A stretch of DNA of 40,119 bases from Ministeria vibrans ATCC 50519 (GCA_943704425.1 CALSCP010000642.1:1-40119), one strand, 5' to 3'. Counted from the stretch's first letter, positions 12,440 to 24,400 are shown. Made by a program: numbers and translations. Notes: generated from the sequence alone by a model not told the origin.

Positions 12440-15400
12440 ATGCTTTGTCGATACAGTCTTGGAGTGATCTGTCTTGCTCTTGCTCTGGCTCTGCCGGTAC
12501 AACTCGTTTTTTTTTCTTCTTCTGCTGCTGCAAGAAATATTTTCAAAAATCTAATCGGACATCTCTGCGCTTATTCGGGCGCAACAACCACAATGCCAAC
12601 ATGAGTGCAACGTGTTGGTACTCTCCAGCGATCTCCCTTGCCTACTAAGGGCGTATCTTGCTCGCGCTCTGCACCTCGTTTTTTTTTTTTTTTCTCGTTT
12701 GTGTCTCTCGCACATACCTGAGCAATTATTGAACCTGCCGGCCTTACCGCCCCTTACCAATACCCTGCCTCTTCCGTTCCGGTGCCTCTGAGCCTGCCCC
12801 GCGTGCCAGAGAATCAGCCAATGGTGTTCGTGAAATCGTTTGCTGTGTGATTTTTTTTTTTTTTTTTTTTTTGCACCAGCCGTCCCAAACAGCATTCCAT
12901 CTTCGTGCTTGACCTCCCAGCCGCTTCTGCGCTACTTGTTGGGCCTGGTTTGGTAGAAACGCTAGCGTATCGTTCTGTGCAGACACGTGCAGAGGATGTG
13001 CGTGACGATGTATTTTCGTATGTTCCCTCACAGCCGCTTCTTATTCTCGAGCGTCTTCTTATTCTCAGTTTCACTTGTCATCTTTTTTTTTGGAGGGGGA
13101 GGCGTTTTTATATCTGACTCACATCAGTTACACTCACTGTCTTTTGATTTTAATTTGCTTTACGGCGATAAGAAGCAGAGCTTTTCTTTTTACAACTTTT
13201 CTTCTACGACTTTTTTTTTTTCGCGTTTTTCGCGGCTGTTTTAAACGTCCCAATCAAACTTACACTTGGAGAATCAAGAGGGTCTTTTTGGTTTTTTGTA
13301 TGGCGTTGCATTTTGATCGCCAGTGCAAGTATCCACATCTGCTTTGTCGCTGTTACTGAAAATTACATTTTTTCACTTTGTAGGGTGTCTCTGCCGTGTG
13401 CAATCCTGCATGCGTGCTTGACTCCACATGTGTCGGAACTACATGTGTGTGCCCCGCGGGCCTCACCGGAGCCACTTGTGAAGACGTCATTGACGTCTGC
13501 GAATCGAGTCCGTGCACCAATGACGGAACATGCGCTCCTGATGCGGCTGCCCACAAGCCCGTCGCGGCCGGCTGGGAAACTGGCCAGGAGGAGGGTGCAA
13601 CCAATGTCGCCGTGCTCGCTGGTTACACATTTAACAATGTGTACGCTGGCCGCACCGTTACGCACCTGGGTATGCACTTCCTCACGGCAAACTTTCTCGA
13701 AGAGGTGCACGACGTTGGTCTGTTCAACTCGTCGTTCCACTTGATTGCCCAGGTGACCATCACCAACTCGTCGACTTTGATGCACTTTACCGATCCGCCA
13801 AACAGTGTTGATGGCGACTTCTTCTACGAGACGCTCGCAACGCCCGTTCCGCTCAACGCCAACGAACAGTACACGCTGCAGGCCGTGTACAAAAACGTTG
13901 ACGCCAACGACGGCTGGATCGCCTCCAACATCTTCACCTATCAGCGTGGCATCCATTTTGTTGAGGGCTACAAGCAGTTTGTCGTCAACTCTCTCGACGC
14001 CCATCTTCAGGATCCCCACAACCCCAACTTCTTCGGTTCGTTCTCGGCCACAACCTACTTCGGCCCTAATGCTATCTTTGGTGGCGATGTCATTCCCGAC
14101 CAGTACACTTGCTCGTGTCATTCGTACACTACCGGTGAACACTGCGAAACCAACATTGACGAGTGCGCCTCGTCGCCATGCACCAACGGCGGCACCTGTA
14201 CCGACCTTTTCGACGGCTTCACCTGCGAATGTGTTGCAGGCTCCACCGGTGTGACCTGTGAATCCGACATCAACGAGTGCGACTCGTCGCCGTGCTCCAA
14301 CGGCGGCACCTGCGACCAGGGCAGCCAGCTCGATTTCTGGCAGTGTACTTGCGTGACCGGATGGACCGGCGTCATGTGTGAGACTGACATCAACGAGTGT
14401 ACTTCGTCGCCTTGCAGCAACGGCGGCACCTGCAACCAGGACTCCACCGGTGACTTCTGGCAGTGTACATGCCCTCCGGGCTTCACTGGCATCCAGTGCG
14501 AGTCGGACATCAACGAGTGCGCTTCGTCGCCGTGCACCAACGGCGGCACCTGCGACCAGGGTAACCAACCGAATTTCTGGCAGTGTACATGCGTTGCTGG
14601 CACCACCGGCACACAGTGCGAGTCGGACATTGACGAGTGCGCTTCGTCGCCGTGCACCAACGGCGGCACCTGCGACCAGGGCTCCTCGTACGACTTCTGG
14701 CAGTGTACATNNNNNNNGGCACCACCGGCACACAGTGCGAGTCGGACATTGACGAGTGCGCTTCGTCGCCGTGCACCAACGGCGGCACCTGCGACCAGGG
14801 CTCCTCGTACGACTTCTGGCAGTGTACATGCGTTGCTGGCACCACCGGCACACAGTGCGAGTCGGACATTGACGAGTGCGCGTCGTCGCCGTGCTCCAAC
14901 GGCGGCACCTGCGACCAGGGCTCCTCGTACGACTTCTGGCAGTGTACTTGCGTGACTGGATGGACCGGCACGCAGTGCGAGTCTGACATCAACGAGTGCA
15001 CCTCGTCGCCATGCAGCAACGGTGGCGTCTGCAACCAGGATTCCACCGGCGACTTCTGGCAGTGTACGTGCCCCGCGGGCTTCACTGGCATCCAGTGCGA
15101 GTCGGACATCAACGAGTGTGACTCGTCGCCATGCACCAACGGCGGCACCTGCGACCAAGGCAACCAGCCCGATTTCTGGCAGTGCACCTGCGTNNNNNNN
15201 GCTGGCTTTACTGGCATTCAGTGTGAGTCGGACATTGACGAGTGCGCTTCGTCGCCGTGCACCAACGCCGGTACTTGCGAGGAGGCGACAGGCAGCAGCA
15301 GCGGCAGCAGCTCTCCTCAAATTCAGTTTGGAGGTCCTAGCTTCTCCGCTACCTCGTCCGCCGGCAGGGCCATTGTCAACGAATTTGTTGCTGCCTCGAG

Positions 15401-21400: not shown

Positions 21401-24400
21401 CACTCACGGCCGGCACATCATACTCCGTGCAGGCGGTGTTCCTCGCCTCTCAAGACCGTCTCCTTGTCAGCAACATTTTCAACTTGCGCGGCGACGTTAC
21501 CTTTAACTTTGGTTTCCGATTTGACAGCCAGACGCCACAAGATCCTACCACTGCGGGCCTTCAGAATGCTCAGACAGGCGCCAGTCTGTACATTGGACCG
21601 CAAGCGTTCTTCCAGGCGGACTTTTCTATCAACCACTACTCGTGCCAGTGCATCGGTGGCACTACCGGCACCCACTGCGAGTCGGACATTGATGAGTGCG
21701 CATCGAATCCGTGCAAGAACGGCGGCACCTGCGACGAAGGCAACATGCTTGACTTCTTCCAGTGCTCGTGTCTGGGCAACTTCATTGGCGATCGCTGCCA
21801 GACTGAGATTCTCCCTTGCGACTCGTCGCCATGCACCAACGGTGCTACTTGCCGTCGGCTGTTTGGCTCAATTCCGTTCGTCTGCGATTGTGTTCCCGGT
21901 ACCACTGGTCAATTCTGCGAGTCGGATATCAACGAGTGTGCCTCGTCACCGTGCACCAACGGCGGCACCTGCGACCAGGGCTCTATGTACAACTTCTGGC
22001 AGTGTACTTGTCCGCCGACCACGACGGGTCTTCGTTGCGAGACGCCACTCAACGAGTGCGAGTCATCGCCGTGTACTAACGGCGGTACCTGCCAGGAGAC
22101 CTTCCTTGGGTTCGAGTGCTTCTGCCACATTCTCTTTACCGGTGATGTGTGCGAGACTGAATTGGAGGTGTGCGACTCGTCGCCGTGCTCCAATGGCGGT
22201 GTGTGCCAGCCTCTGACGGCTCCCGACGTGATTGTGTCGCAGTGGAACATCAGCGACGTGACCACCGGAACACTCTCAAGCTTTATCGTGTCGTGGAAGT
22301 TTACCACCGACACCGTGCAACAGGTGACCCAATTGGGTCTCTACGACGAAGGCGCCAACGGATTCTTCCAGAACCATCAAGTTGGCCTTTTCGACGAAAG
22401 CGAGGCACAGATTGCGGCTGTCACCGTCACTGCATCGTCGAGCATCGAGAGCAGCTCTGATGAGACATTCTTCTTCCGCTTTGAGTCGCTTCTCAACCCC
22501 GTCACCATCAGTCCCGGCCAGACGTACGCCGTTGTGGCGCTCTTCCCGGCATCCGCTTCTTCGGCTGTTCTGGATCCCTACCGCGAGTCGAACACATTCA
22601 AGACCTTTGAGAACATCAACTTTGTCAAGAGTTTCTACAACCCCAGCACACAGCTGGCGCATCCGGATAGTCTCTCGATCTCCATTGACAGCAACCAGAT
22701 CTACCACGGACCCAACTTCAAGATCAAGGGTCAGGAAATTGCCTCCGAGTTTATCTGCGGCTGCCCCCTCGAGACCACTGGCGTTCTGTGCGAGACCTTT
22801 AACGATGCGTGTGCGTCAGTCACGTGCCTGAATGGCGGCGTGTGCATTCAAAGCGGCTTTGACGTGTCCAACTGCGACTGTCCCTCGTCCACGACGGGTG
22901 CAAACTGCGAAACTCTGATTCTGTTTGAGAGCACCGATCTGCTTGCCCTCTCCAGTGTTCCCGGCAGCGTCGATCCGCTCCACGTCAACCAGGTGACACC
23001 TACGCGTGGTACCAAGCCTACGTACCATTTTATTCCCAACTTCGAGAGCTGGCTTTTGGTGCAGCCGACCGCCGCGGGCGTCAGCCGATCGTTTGTGGGC
23101 CTCAGCGGTCTCGTCCAGTACGGTTGGTTCCGCCTGAGCAGTACATTGAATCCCGAGGAGGGCGCCTGGCTGTTCATTCGCCAGAACAACTACCAGGTCG
23201 CATCGAACATCCGCCAGCGCTACTACGGCGTGTTTATTACGGTCAAGAACGGCCGCAACCTCATTTGCACGTCATACACATTGCTTTCGACGTTTGCCGG
23301 CGGCACCAAGTGCGTCAAGGTGACCACAGACTTGTCGAGCGGCTGGCACCACGTTGTCGTTGTGCTTCGCGCCAGCACCATCTCGTTTCACCTCGATGGC
23401 GAACTCGTCGACGACGTGTCATACCCGGGCTTCGCCAACATCCACATTGGTTCCGAGTCGGATCATCGCAACATCATTGGCGCGCGGACCTCCAACACTC
23501 AGTCGGCGACTTCCGGCTCGCCCGATATCTCCTTTAACTTCTGGGGCGAGCTTCAGTGCCTTGGCGTTAAGGCCCTGGGCGCGACCGAAGACGGATGTGC
23601 CATTGCTGACTCTCCTTGCGAGAATGGAGGTGCCTGTGTCTCCAACGGATTCTCCTACTCATGCACTTGTGCCGCTGGCTGGGGTGGCGACACATGCGAG
23701 ATTGACGGTACTGTCTTCTGCAACGGTGGTGTGCCGACCTTTGGCGTCAACGATGCCATCACGTGCAACTGTACCGGCACCAACATGGTCGGTGAGGTGT
23801 GCACCGTGGGCCTGACGTCGCTCCTCGAGCATCCAATCAGCCCCAACCCAGTTTCGGGCCTTTCGGGCAACCGTTTGACGGATCCCAACACAAACGACGA
23901 CACTATCGTGCAGTTTACGGGCGGCAGCATTGAGATTGCCCAGCACGACGTGACGTCCAACTCGCAGCTGGTCAACTTTATCGCTGGTGGCTACATGTAT
24001 GTGCCATCGGGTGGCAACTCAGGTTGGTTTATCTCGCATATGCCGGGCACTAACCCGGGCTCGTTGGACCGTTGGTTTGGCGTCTTTGTGGATCCGGTTC
24101 AGGAGCGCTTTATTATCCAATACATCAGTGAGGCGAACGCGCTCAAGACGATTGTGTACGAGACCACGACCACACCTCAGTCAGCGGTCATCTCGCAATT
24201 CTTCAGCAACAGCGACCTGGCGACGCTTCATCACTTTGCTATTGCATTCAACCCGACCATGCCGACCAACCCGGGCGCCGGCCAGACTGACATCATCATC
24301 TACTTTGACGGTTCGCCCATCAGCGGTGGCGCCTACCTGGCCATGGACCCCATTAACACTTCGGTGCGCTCCGCGCCCTGGTATGTGGCCGCTCGTCCTC

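Follow-up and report, generated by a model that had tools for sequence, protein, structure and literature searches.

The locus described here raises the question of what becomes of an EGF module when its chain is interrupted after the third cysteine, and what kind of domain is lodged in the gap. We analysed a stretch of 40,119 nucleotides from Ministeria vibrans ATCC 50519 (CALSCP010000642.1:1-40119), referred to as the window. The window is eukaryotic and contains the greater part of a single expressed gene, about 3,700 codons long. Long open frames on the plus strand (13384-24603) encode tandem EGF modules, and the gene ends with a stop codon at 24601-24603. A sequence-only reading had proposed that eight of these modules are split by bacterial-type, DUF4082-like domains. 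Taken together, the data presented below make it likely that the product is an EGF rod carrying DUF4082 knobs in Cys3-Cys4 hairpins; a binding role and a bacterial origin of the knobs are proposed.

A motif scan yielded 43 EGF starts of the type C-x-S-x-P-C-x-N-x-G-x-C; unit 6, which reads CASDPC, was added separately. Eight EGF starts lacked Cys4 within the normal 10 residues and resumed 175 to 193 amino acids later with a C-terminal half of the type [YF]-x-C-x-C-x(5)-G-x-x-C-E. These split units lie on the plus strand between 13498 and 22794. Insert limits were counted in frame from after Cys3 to before [YF]xCxC. All eight interruptions of the sequence-only reading were recovered, and its insert coordinates agreed with the in-frame limits to within one base (Table 1). 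The split modules carry the EGF-like signature (PF00008) with six cysteines and canonical spacing outside the insert. In addition, the rod holds at least 31 intact EGF modules, many of them with the motif D-I-[DN]-E-C before Cys1. Pairwise identity among the eight inserts was 20-43%, and they fell into the groups 1, 7, 8 and 3, 5 and 2, 4, 6. Inserts 2 and 4 encode the same protein sequence, which reduces the number of distinct inserts to seven. The last group, designated type B, has two extra cysteines, and in many paralogous units (L012-L028) another, different pair is added close to the C-terminal loops (alignment columns about 188 and 211). The extra pairs suggest additional disulfides within the knob.

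The inserts might be artefacts, i.e. unspliced introns, misassembly or bacterial contamination in a eukaryotic scaffold. RNA contigs of four runs, one of them recorded as polyA RNA from a marine metagenome, were aligned to 18401-24400. All four runs showed both GT..AG joints listed in Table 1 and thus are transcript assemblies. Single contigs were unbroken through 18615-19396 + 19486-20159, 21068-21972 and 21954-24400, crossing inserts 5-8. Because the spliced contigs remove two real introns, yet cross inserts 5-8 unbroken, these inserts are not introns. The possibility that the inserts are spliced out, which the sequence-only reading had itself raised, was thereby checked, and inserts 5-8 are retained in transcripts. 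The two introns are the verified ones within the aligned range, and neither flanks an insert itself. Moreover, every insert continues the reading frame of the two EGF halves flanking it and is free of stops, and the same nested unit is present on at least 15 other contigs. On the other hand, runs of N and a block identical at 946 of 947 bases (see below) show that repeats were assembled imperfectly, and the RNA alignment covered inserts 5-8. On balance the explanation as artefacts is largely refuted and retains next to no probability. Other 'joints' of the RNA contigs had short sides or extra letters in between and were located in repeated EGF sequence; we read them as cross-matches to paralogous EGF transcripts. 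In all four runs there were contigs that joined 18441 to 19225 across an identical stretch of 36 other letters. This joint is most likely a paralogous EGF transcript that matches both sides, not splicing.

The identity of the inserts was approached by profile searches. All searches and folding used single exon pieces, with exons unjoined and N runs unbridged. Pfam DUF4082 (PF13313) matched insert 8 with E 5.5e-6 and 26.8 bits when the insert was searched alone and with 28.3 bits in the whole open reading frame, the gathering cut-off being 28.4 bits. For inserts 1-7 Pfam DUF4082 gave no hit even at E 5. Judged strictly by the Pfam cut-off, the inserts of this gene are not DUF4082 members. A profile of the seven distinct inserts was then run against 1.84 billion representative proteins and retrieved 3278 proteins at E <= 0.001 and 347 at E <= 1e-10. 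The named top matches were bacterial (Wenzhouxiangellaceae, Burkholderiaceae and Arenicella). Among the 150 best matches 83 were proteins of about 210 amino acids consisting of a signal peptide, one domain ending with FGPNF and a PEP-CTERM tail; 52 had PEP within the last 45 residues. The window's own protein aside, none of the other 149 best database matches contained an EGF. In the alignment of 90 rows, 75 had a Pfam DUF4082 match and 45 a PEP-CTERM match, and the longer database matches exceeded the DUF4082 cut-off with 41-74 bits. Bacterial relatives were also found in giant surface proteins with SASA esterase, FG-GAP, F5/8-C, VCBS and TSP3 domains.

In the opposite direction, a profile built from the 83 bacterial proteins alone scored the inserts with 125.5 to 17.2 bits (Table 1); the best of 400 shuffled inserts reached 10.9 bits. 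The weakest score, that of insert 6, is modestly above noise, and the test is not fully independent because the protein set had been picked by the insert profile. The consensus of the bacterial relatives, GWxF...LG..D...H.VGLWD...FR...P.TL.AG.TY...FGPNF, equals the motif that had been noticed as common to the inserts, which hence is real. PEP-CTERM (PF07589) had no match in the proteins of the window, where each insert runs directly into the C-terminal EGF half. NCBIfam gave no match for any insert nor for the C-terminal region of the protein, and a search of PDB chains by sequence with the insert profile returned nothing at E 10. Thus, the profiles support assigning the inserts to the DUF4082 superfamily and to its bacterial PEP-CTERM type. 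The proposed resemblance to DUF4082 holds at the superfamily level, where profiles agree in both directions and shuffles are beaten; at the level of the Pfam cut-off it does not, as no insert reached it.

We examined the predicted fold of the inserts with AlphaFold models of two units. The model of 22057-22917 (EGF, unit 8, EGF; based on the 90-row alignment) had a mean predicted local distance difference test score (pLDDT) of 83.4 with 90-98 in the insert. For unit 4, a type-B unit, the pLDDT was 73.9 with 83-96 in the insert core and 50-65 in the EGF parts. In a structure search over 48,161 PDB representatives the nearest structures to the insert of unit 8 (residues 52-227) were the PHR domains 3no8 (Z 11.1) and 3gbw (Z 10.9). 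Further neighbours were cyanophage and PBCV-1 capsid proteins, the Cwp84 lectin-like domain, phage baseplate domains, carbohydrate-binding modules (CBMs) of esterases and fucolectins. The insert of unit 4 had the same neighbours, with 3no8 at Z 11.4, and Foldseek concurred with PHR and CBM35. Both insert types are therefore predicted to be PHR/CBM-like beta-sandwiches.

The structural neighbours bear on the alternative of a familiar eukaryotic domain in an architecture already described, namely laminin IV type A (Laminin_B) or PHR. The insertion site is that of laminin L4, and the best structural neighbours are PHR domains with Z about 11. Yet neither Pfam Laminin_B (PF00052) nor PHR (PF08005) matched any insert at E 5. 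In the whole genome the Laminin_B profile found nothing and the PHR profile two copies only, both on contig C1900. Furthermore, sequence profiles tie the inserts to bacterial DUF4082 with up to 125 bits. A common eukaryotic domain, which had been named as an outcome contrary to the sequence-only reading, was thus looked for without a sequence match, and we consider this alternative extremely unlikely. An Atlas search returned sub-threshold leads to a DUF4082 cluster (0.79) and a PHR cluster (0.76). The two genomic PHR domains (68 and 86 bits; G000:C1900:9937-12345) reside in an open frame of 4775 amino acids, which suggests a MYCBP2/Highwire-like giant protein.

Next we consider whether the two halves of a split module still form one EGF. 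Human Notch1 EGF21-23 aligned with 109 of 113 residues over residues 1-287 of the unit 8 model (Z 8.3, root-mean-square deviation 5.7), and Notch1 EGF11-13 with Z 7.5. Two-EGF pieces of Del-1 (Z 7.0, root-mean-square deviation 3.5) and of DLK1 aligned over residues 36/37-287, i.e. over the split EGF and the next EGF. Because the model has only about 106 EGF residues, these alignments would require that the halves form one EGF in line with its neighbours. Predicted strands at residues 49-52 and 232-235 occupy the position of the EGF hairpin. The prediction is therefore that both halves reassemble into one EGF and that the three EGFs form a straight rod. The expectation that the halves fold as one domain is in keeping with the model, in which Notch1 EGF21-23 spans the split module.

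The opposite case would be degenerate EGF remnants, either unpaired or pairing with neighbours, with the inserts as ordinary domains between EGFs. It draws on the facts that the reassembly is based on prediction and that the EGF parts of the unit 4 model have low pLDDT. It is at odds with the superposition of three- and two-EGF crystal structures across the split module, with the strands at the hairpin, and with conservation. When 22 units sharing 21-35% identity were aligned, none of the six EGF cysteines varied, nor did S3, P5 or the glycine that precedes Cys6; the aromatic-x-C-x-C...G..C pattern of the C-terminal half was invariant or nearly so. Degenerate halves consequently appear very unlikely.

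The nested units are not confined to this gene. The genome of 29.7 Mb in 2860 contigs was searched with the insert profile, which matched at least 40 times on at least 15 contigs, in open frames of up to about 4,200 amino acids. At the retrieved loci 16 of 28 distinct domains were flanked by both EGF halves in a strict test, the others being cut by locus or frame ends. A direct scan of these loci for split EGFs found 21, of which 19 had a DUF4082-like insert, so that at least 19 further nested units exist on other contigs. Six nested paralogues scored above the Pfam DUF4082 cut-off with 29.0-46 bits. Comparison of unit 1 with a paralogue on contig C439 gave dS 0.76, dN 0.15 and dN/dS 0.19, a ratio that indicates purifying selection on the nested unit. 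We conclude that the composite unit is an old, selected, lineage-wide building block of a large gene family and not a one-off. One split EGF at locus L014 (minus-strand frame from 2144, amino acids 209-410) has a 202-residue insert without a match to the DUF4082-like profile; this may be another nested domain type.

With respect to origin, a tree of 30 genome copies and 117 database domains showed the genome copies clustering, with 7 label changes versus 27.5 for shuffles. In a set of 69 rows the tree uniting all 30 copies was 50 log-likelihood units better than a quick free tree (p-AU 0.955). Since one clade of 30 copies was not rejected, a single origin in the lineage is compatible with the data. 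The distribution of the domain is overwhelmingly bacterial and EGF is missing from the other 149 best matches, and on these grounds we infer a bacterial origin: the domain would have been acquired once from bacteria and then multiplied inside EGF modules.

The closest known system is laminin. Laminin L4 is a CBM35-like beta-sandwich that interrupts an LE module between Cys3 and Cys4 while leaving the LE array regular (PMC5338690). Likewise, the domains described here are predicted beta-sandwiches of about 180 amino acids between Cys3 and Cys4 of an EGF-type module in a continuous array. The analogy to laminin IV drawn earlier is thus exact in topology (PMC5338690). In contrast to L4, however, the host is a canonical EGF with six cysteines instead of an LE module with eight, and the inserted domain belongs to another sequence family, DUF4082, with no match to Laminin_B. 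Laminins have one or two nested units per chain, whereas here there are eight per protein and dozens in the genome, in a protist. The nested unit works like L4 without being a member of its family.

The bacterial PEP-CTERM/DUF4082 proteins share the same domain by profile in both directions, including the terminal FGPNF strand, and some bacterial giants also have many copies (one Wenzhouxiangellaceae protein has 8 stretches). Yet bacterial copies are free-standing, with a signal peptide, one domain and a PEP-CTERM anchor in about 210 amino acids, or arranged in tandem with other surface domains, while here PEP-CTERM is lacking and every evaluable copy is nested in an EGF. Among known structures, the predicted inserts of both types come closest to the PHR domains of MYCBP2/Highwire and BTBD2 (3no8 Z 11.1-11.4, 3gbw Z 10.8-10.9, 135-142 residues aligned), but PHR domains are cytosolic, not nested in EGFs and without a sequence match. 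In the nearest DUF4082 cluster of the Atlas few members have a taxon on record, and phages (Uroviricota) are the most frequent phylum among those; the best structural neighbours included capsid or baseplate domains of cyanophage, PBCV-1, phi812 and Bxb1. DUF4082-like sandwiches may be common in phage surface proteins.

The rod itself resembles those of Notch and fibrillin, with repeats of about 40 amino acids, many with D-x-[DN]-E-C before Cys1, and with C-x-S-x-P-C and C-x4-T-C motifs; identity to the Notch1 EGFs in the structural alignment was 35-38%. It differs from them by a longer C3-C4 loop, eight nested domains and the lack of a transmembrane segment in the last exon. The N-terminal halves of the split EGFs retain C-x-S-x-P-C and mostly C-x4-T-C, and the genome has matches to the GT90 (POGLUT) and O-FucT families (G000:C2228:23142-23783, C2085:5621-7410, C498:24920-26039 and C372:30464-32575).

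The sequence-only reading knew of no described protein with this architecture, and searches of proteins, metagenomes and literature likewise returned none with EGF plus DUF4082. Apart from the window's own fragment, word-indexed homologue searches with insert 8 and with a profile of 22 units yielded nothing but one bacterial PEP-CTERM protein and one EGF fragment; they are weak negatives because a length window limits them and EGF words flood them. A scan of metagenome contigs with unit 8 found nothing, and literature searches for split or interrupted EGF returned only noise from EGFP. While EGF modules with nested domains are known, DUF4082 nested in canonical EGFs and amplified in a protist is not described in the sources that were searchable.

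How might such a protein function? The proposed protein would be an EGF rod followed by a C-terminal LamG-like region, with a beta-sandwich of 175-193 amino acids nested at eight places. With the halves pairing, as predicted, into one disulfide-bonded EGF, the rod would stay continuous and the DUF4082 domain would project sideways as a knob. The stalk could be a secreted or cell-coat glycoprotein, and the knobs could be binding modules, most likely for glycans or polymer surfaces, presented multivalently on a stiff stalk. The prey capture or matrix role suggested by the sequence-only reading is conceivable. Such binding by sideways knobs is favoured by the lectin- and CBM-like neighbours, the context of bacterial surface proteins and the divergence of the knobs beside homogenised EGFs; we judge the chances that it is correct to be about even. 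A wider proposal is that the Cys3-Cys4 hairpin of the EGF is a general docking site, where a bacterial surface domain was captured once, independently of laminin L4, then amplified and diversified into dozens of knobs that form a repertoire of multivalent recognition proteins, e.g. for bacterial or algal surface polysaccharides. We put this forward tentatively, as a possibility with less than even prospects.

Alternatively, the knobs might be structural and not binding, serving, as has been proposed for laminin L4/LF, as spacers, kinks or sites of lateral self-association that shape an extracellular network or cell coat without an external ligand. Laminin L4 and LF, similarly positioned and of CBM-like fold, have no known ligand or carbohydrate binding (PMC5338690), and what the 22 units conserve belongs to the core (F, L, G-P, Y) and outlines no obvious shared binding site. 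However, divergence of the inserts to 20-43% identity beside nearly identical EGFs fits diversified surfaces better than a uniform spacer, and the neighbours by fold are mostly binding modules. We hold a structural role to be rather unlikely.

Several further points weigh against an EGF rod with binding knobs of bacterial origin. For inserts 1-4 the evidence of retention in the transcript is frame continuity, the RNA alignment having spanned 18401-24400. The exon for the signal peptide is a guess from the sequence. The disulfide pattern of the split EGF is a model prediction, the EGF parts of the unit 4 model are of low confidence, and there is no solved structure among the relatives of the insert. 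No binding data exist for any DUF4082 protein; the only papers found to mention the family are a Methylococcus secretome study and a survey of Rhizobiales amyloids. Because laminin L4, the closest analogue, has no known ligand (PMC5338690), a purely structural role is just as possible. Finally, the domain tree is poorly resolved and unrooted and establishes neither direction nor donor, and vertical inheritance with wide loss is possible.

The features of the gene are compiled in Table 1. The candidate first exon would join the large coding exon at 13384 in phase 0 across an intron of 887 nt. This exon, together with a last exon in which no segment is hydrophobic enough to span a membrane (the best Kyte-Doolittle mean over 19 residues was 1.54, inside insert 7), suggests that the protein is probably secreted. 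N runs and introns divide the coding sequence into seven pieces, all of them free of stop codons. Apparent frame changes of the EGF array coincide with the four N runs, i.e. with assembly gaps that shift the frame, and because these runs interrupt the array the exact repeat count is uncertain. The blocks 15198-16144 and 17698-18644 were identical at 946 of 947 bases; each contains two EGFs besides one type-B insert, and N runs border the first block. The 842 bases upstream (14350-15191 versus 16856-17697) had 40 differing sites. The near-identical blocks are either a very recent duplication or an assembly artefact, and the pattern points to a repeat of about 2.5 kb or an artefact of gap filling.

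Table 1. Features of the split-EGF gene. Bits are scores by the profile built from bacterial proteins alone; insert lengths in amino acids (aa).
Feature	Coordinates	Strand	Insert	Bits	Remarks
Candidate first exon	12440-12496	+			ATG and 19-codon hydrophobic, signal-peptide-like segment, GT donor at end; inferred
Large coding exon	13384-19398	+			Contains the EGF array including split units 1-5; frame open from one to the next of four short N runs
Split unit 1	13498-14148	+	13534-14103 (190 aa)	94.3	N-half 13498-13533, C-half 14104-14148
N-run stretch	14711-17223				Four runs of 7-9 bases: 14711-14717, 15194-15200, 16146-16152, 17215-17223
Split unit 2	15243-15902	+	15279-15857 (193 aa)	29.0	Divergent type B, extra Cys pair; near-identical to unit 4
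Split unit 3	16277-16888	+	16313-16843 (177 aa)	90.5	
Split unit 4	17743-18402	+	17779-18357 (193 aa)	29.0	Type B; protein-identical to unit 2
Split unit 5	18658-19263	+	18694-19218 (175 aa)	56.0	RNA contigs unbroken
Intron, 89 nt	19399-19487	+			GT..AG, phase 0, directly before Cys1 of unit 6; joint in four RNA runs
Split unit 6	19488-20105	+	19524-20060 (179 aa)	17.2	Type B; RNA
Intron, 109 nt	20961-21069	+			GT..AG, phase 0, directly before Cys1 of unit 7; RNA joint
Split unit 7	21070-21681	+	21106-21636 (177 aa)	86.5	RNA
Split unit 8	22171-22794	+	22207-22749 (181 aa)	125.5	RNA; sole insert matching Pfam DUF4082 directly
Laminin_G_3 (ConA-like), best stretch	23302-23508	+			Pfam match in C-terminal non-EGF region, last exon

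As to the organism, an intact single-exon HSP70 is present at L031:1306-3399 (G000:C2175) with 70-73% identity, and no more, to named proteins; its single match at 100% was an ENA sequence, so that the protein collection contains no close annotated relative. LHC genes were looked for in the genome and none were found, which suggests a heterotroph.

Nesting between Cys3 and Cys4 of an EGF-type module is otherwise known to us from laminin L4 alone (PMC5338690); here it occurs with an unrelated and otherwise bacterial domain. The gene family thus amounts to an independent, highly replicated natural experiment on the tolerance of EGF modules for nested domains. It also offers a eukaryotic, expressed setting for testing what the uncharacterised DUF4082/PEP-CTERM domain does, and in it a surface domain of bacteria has probably become part of a family of eukaryotic extracellular proteins. 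Should the knobs prove to be diversified lectins, this marine heterotroph would possess a recognition repertoire of a new type.

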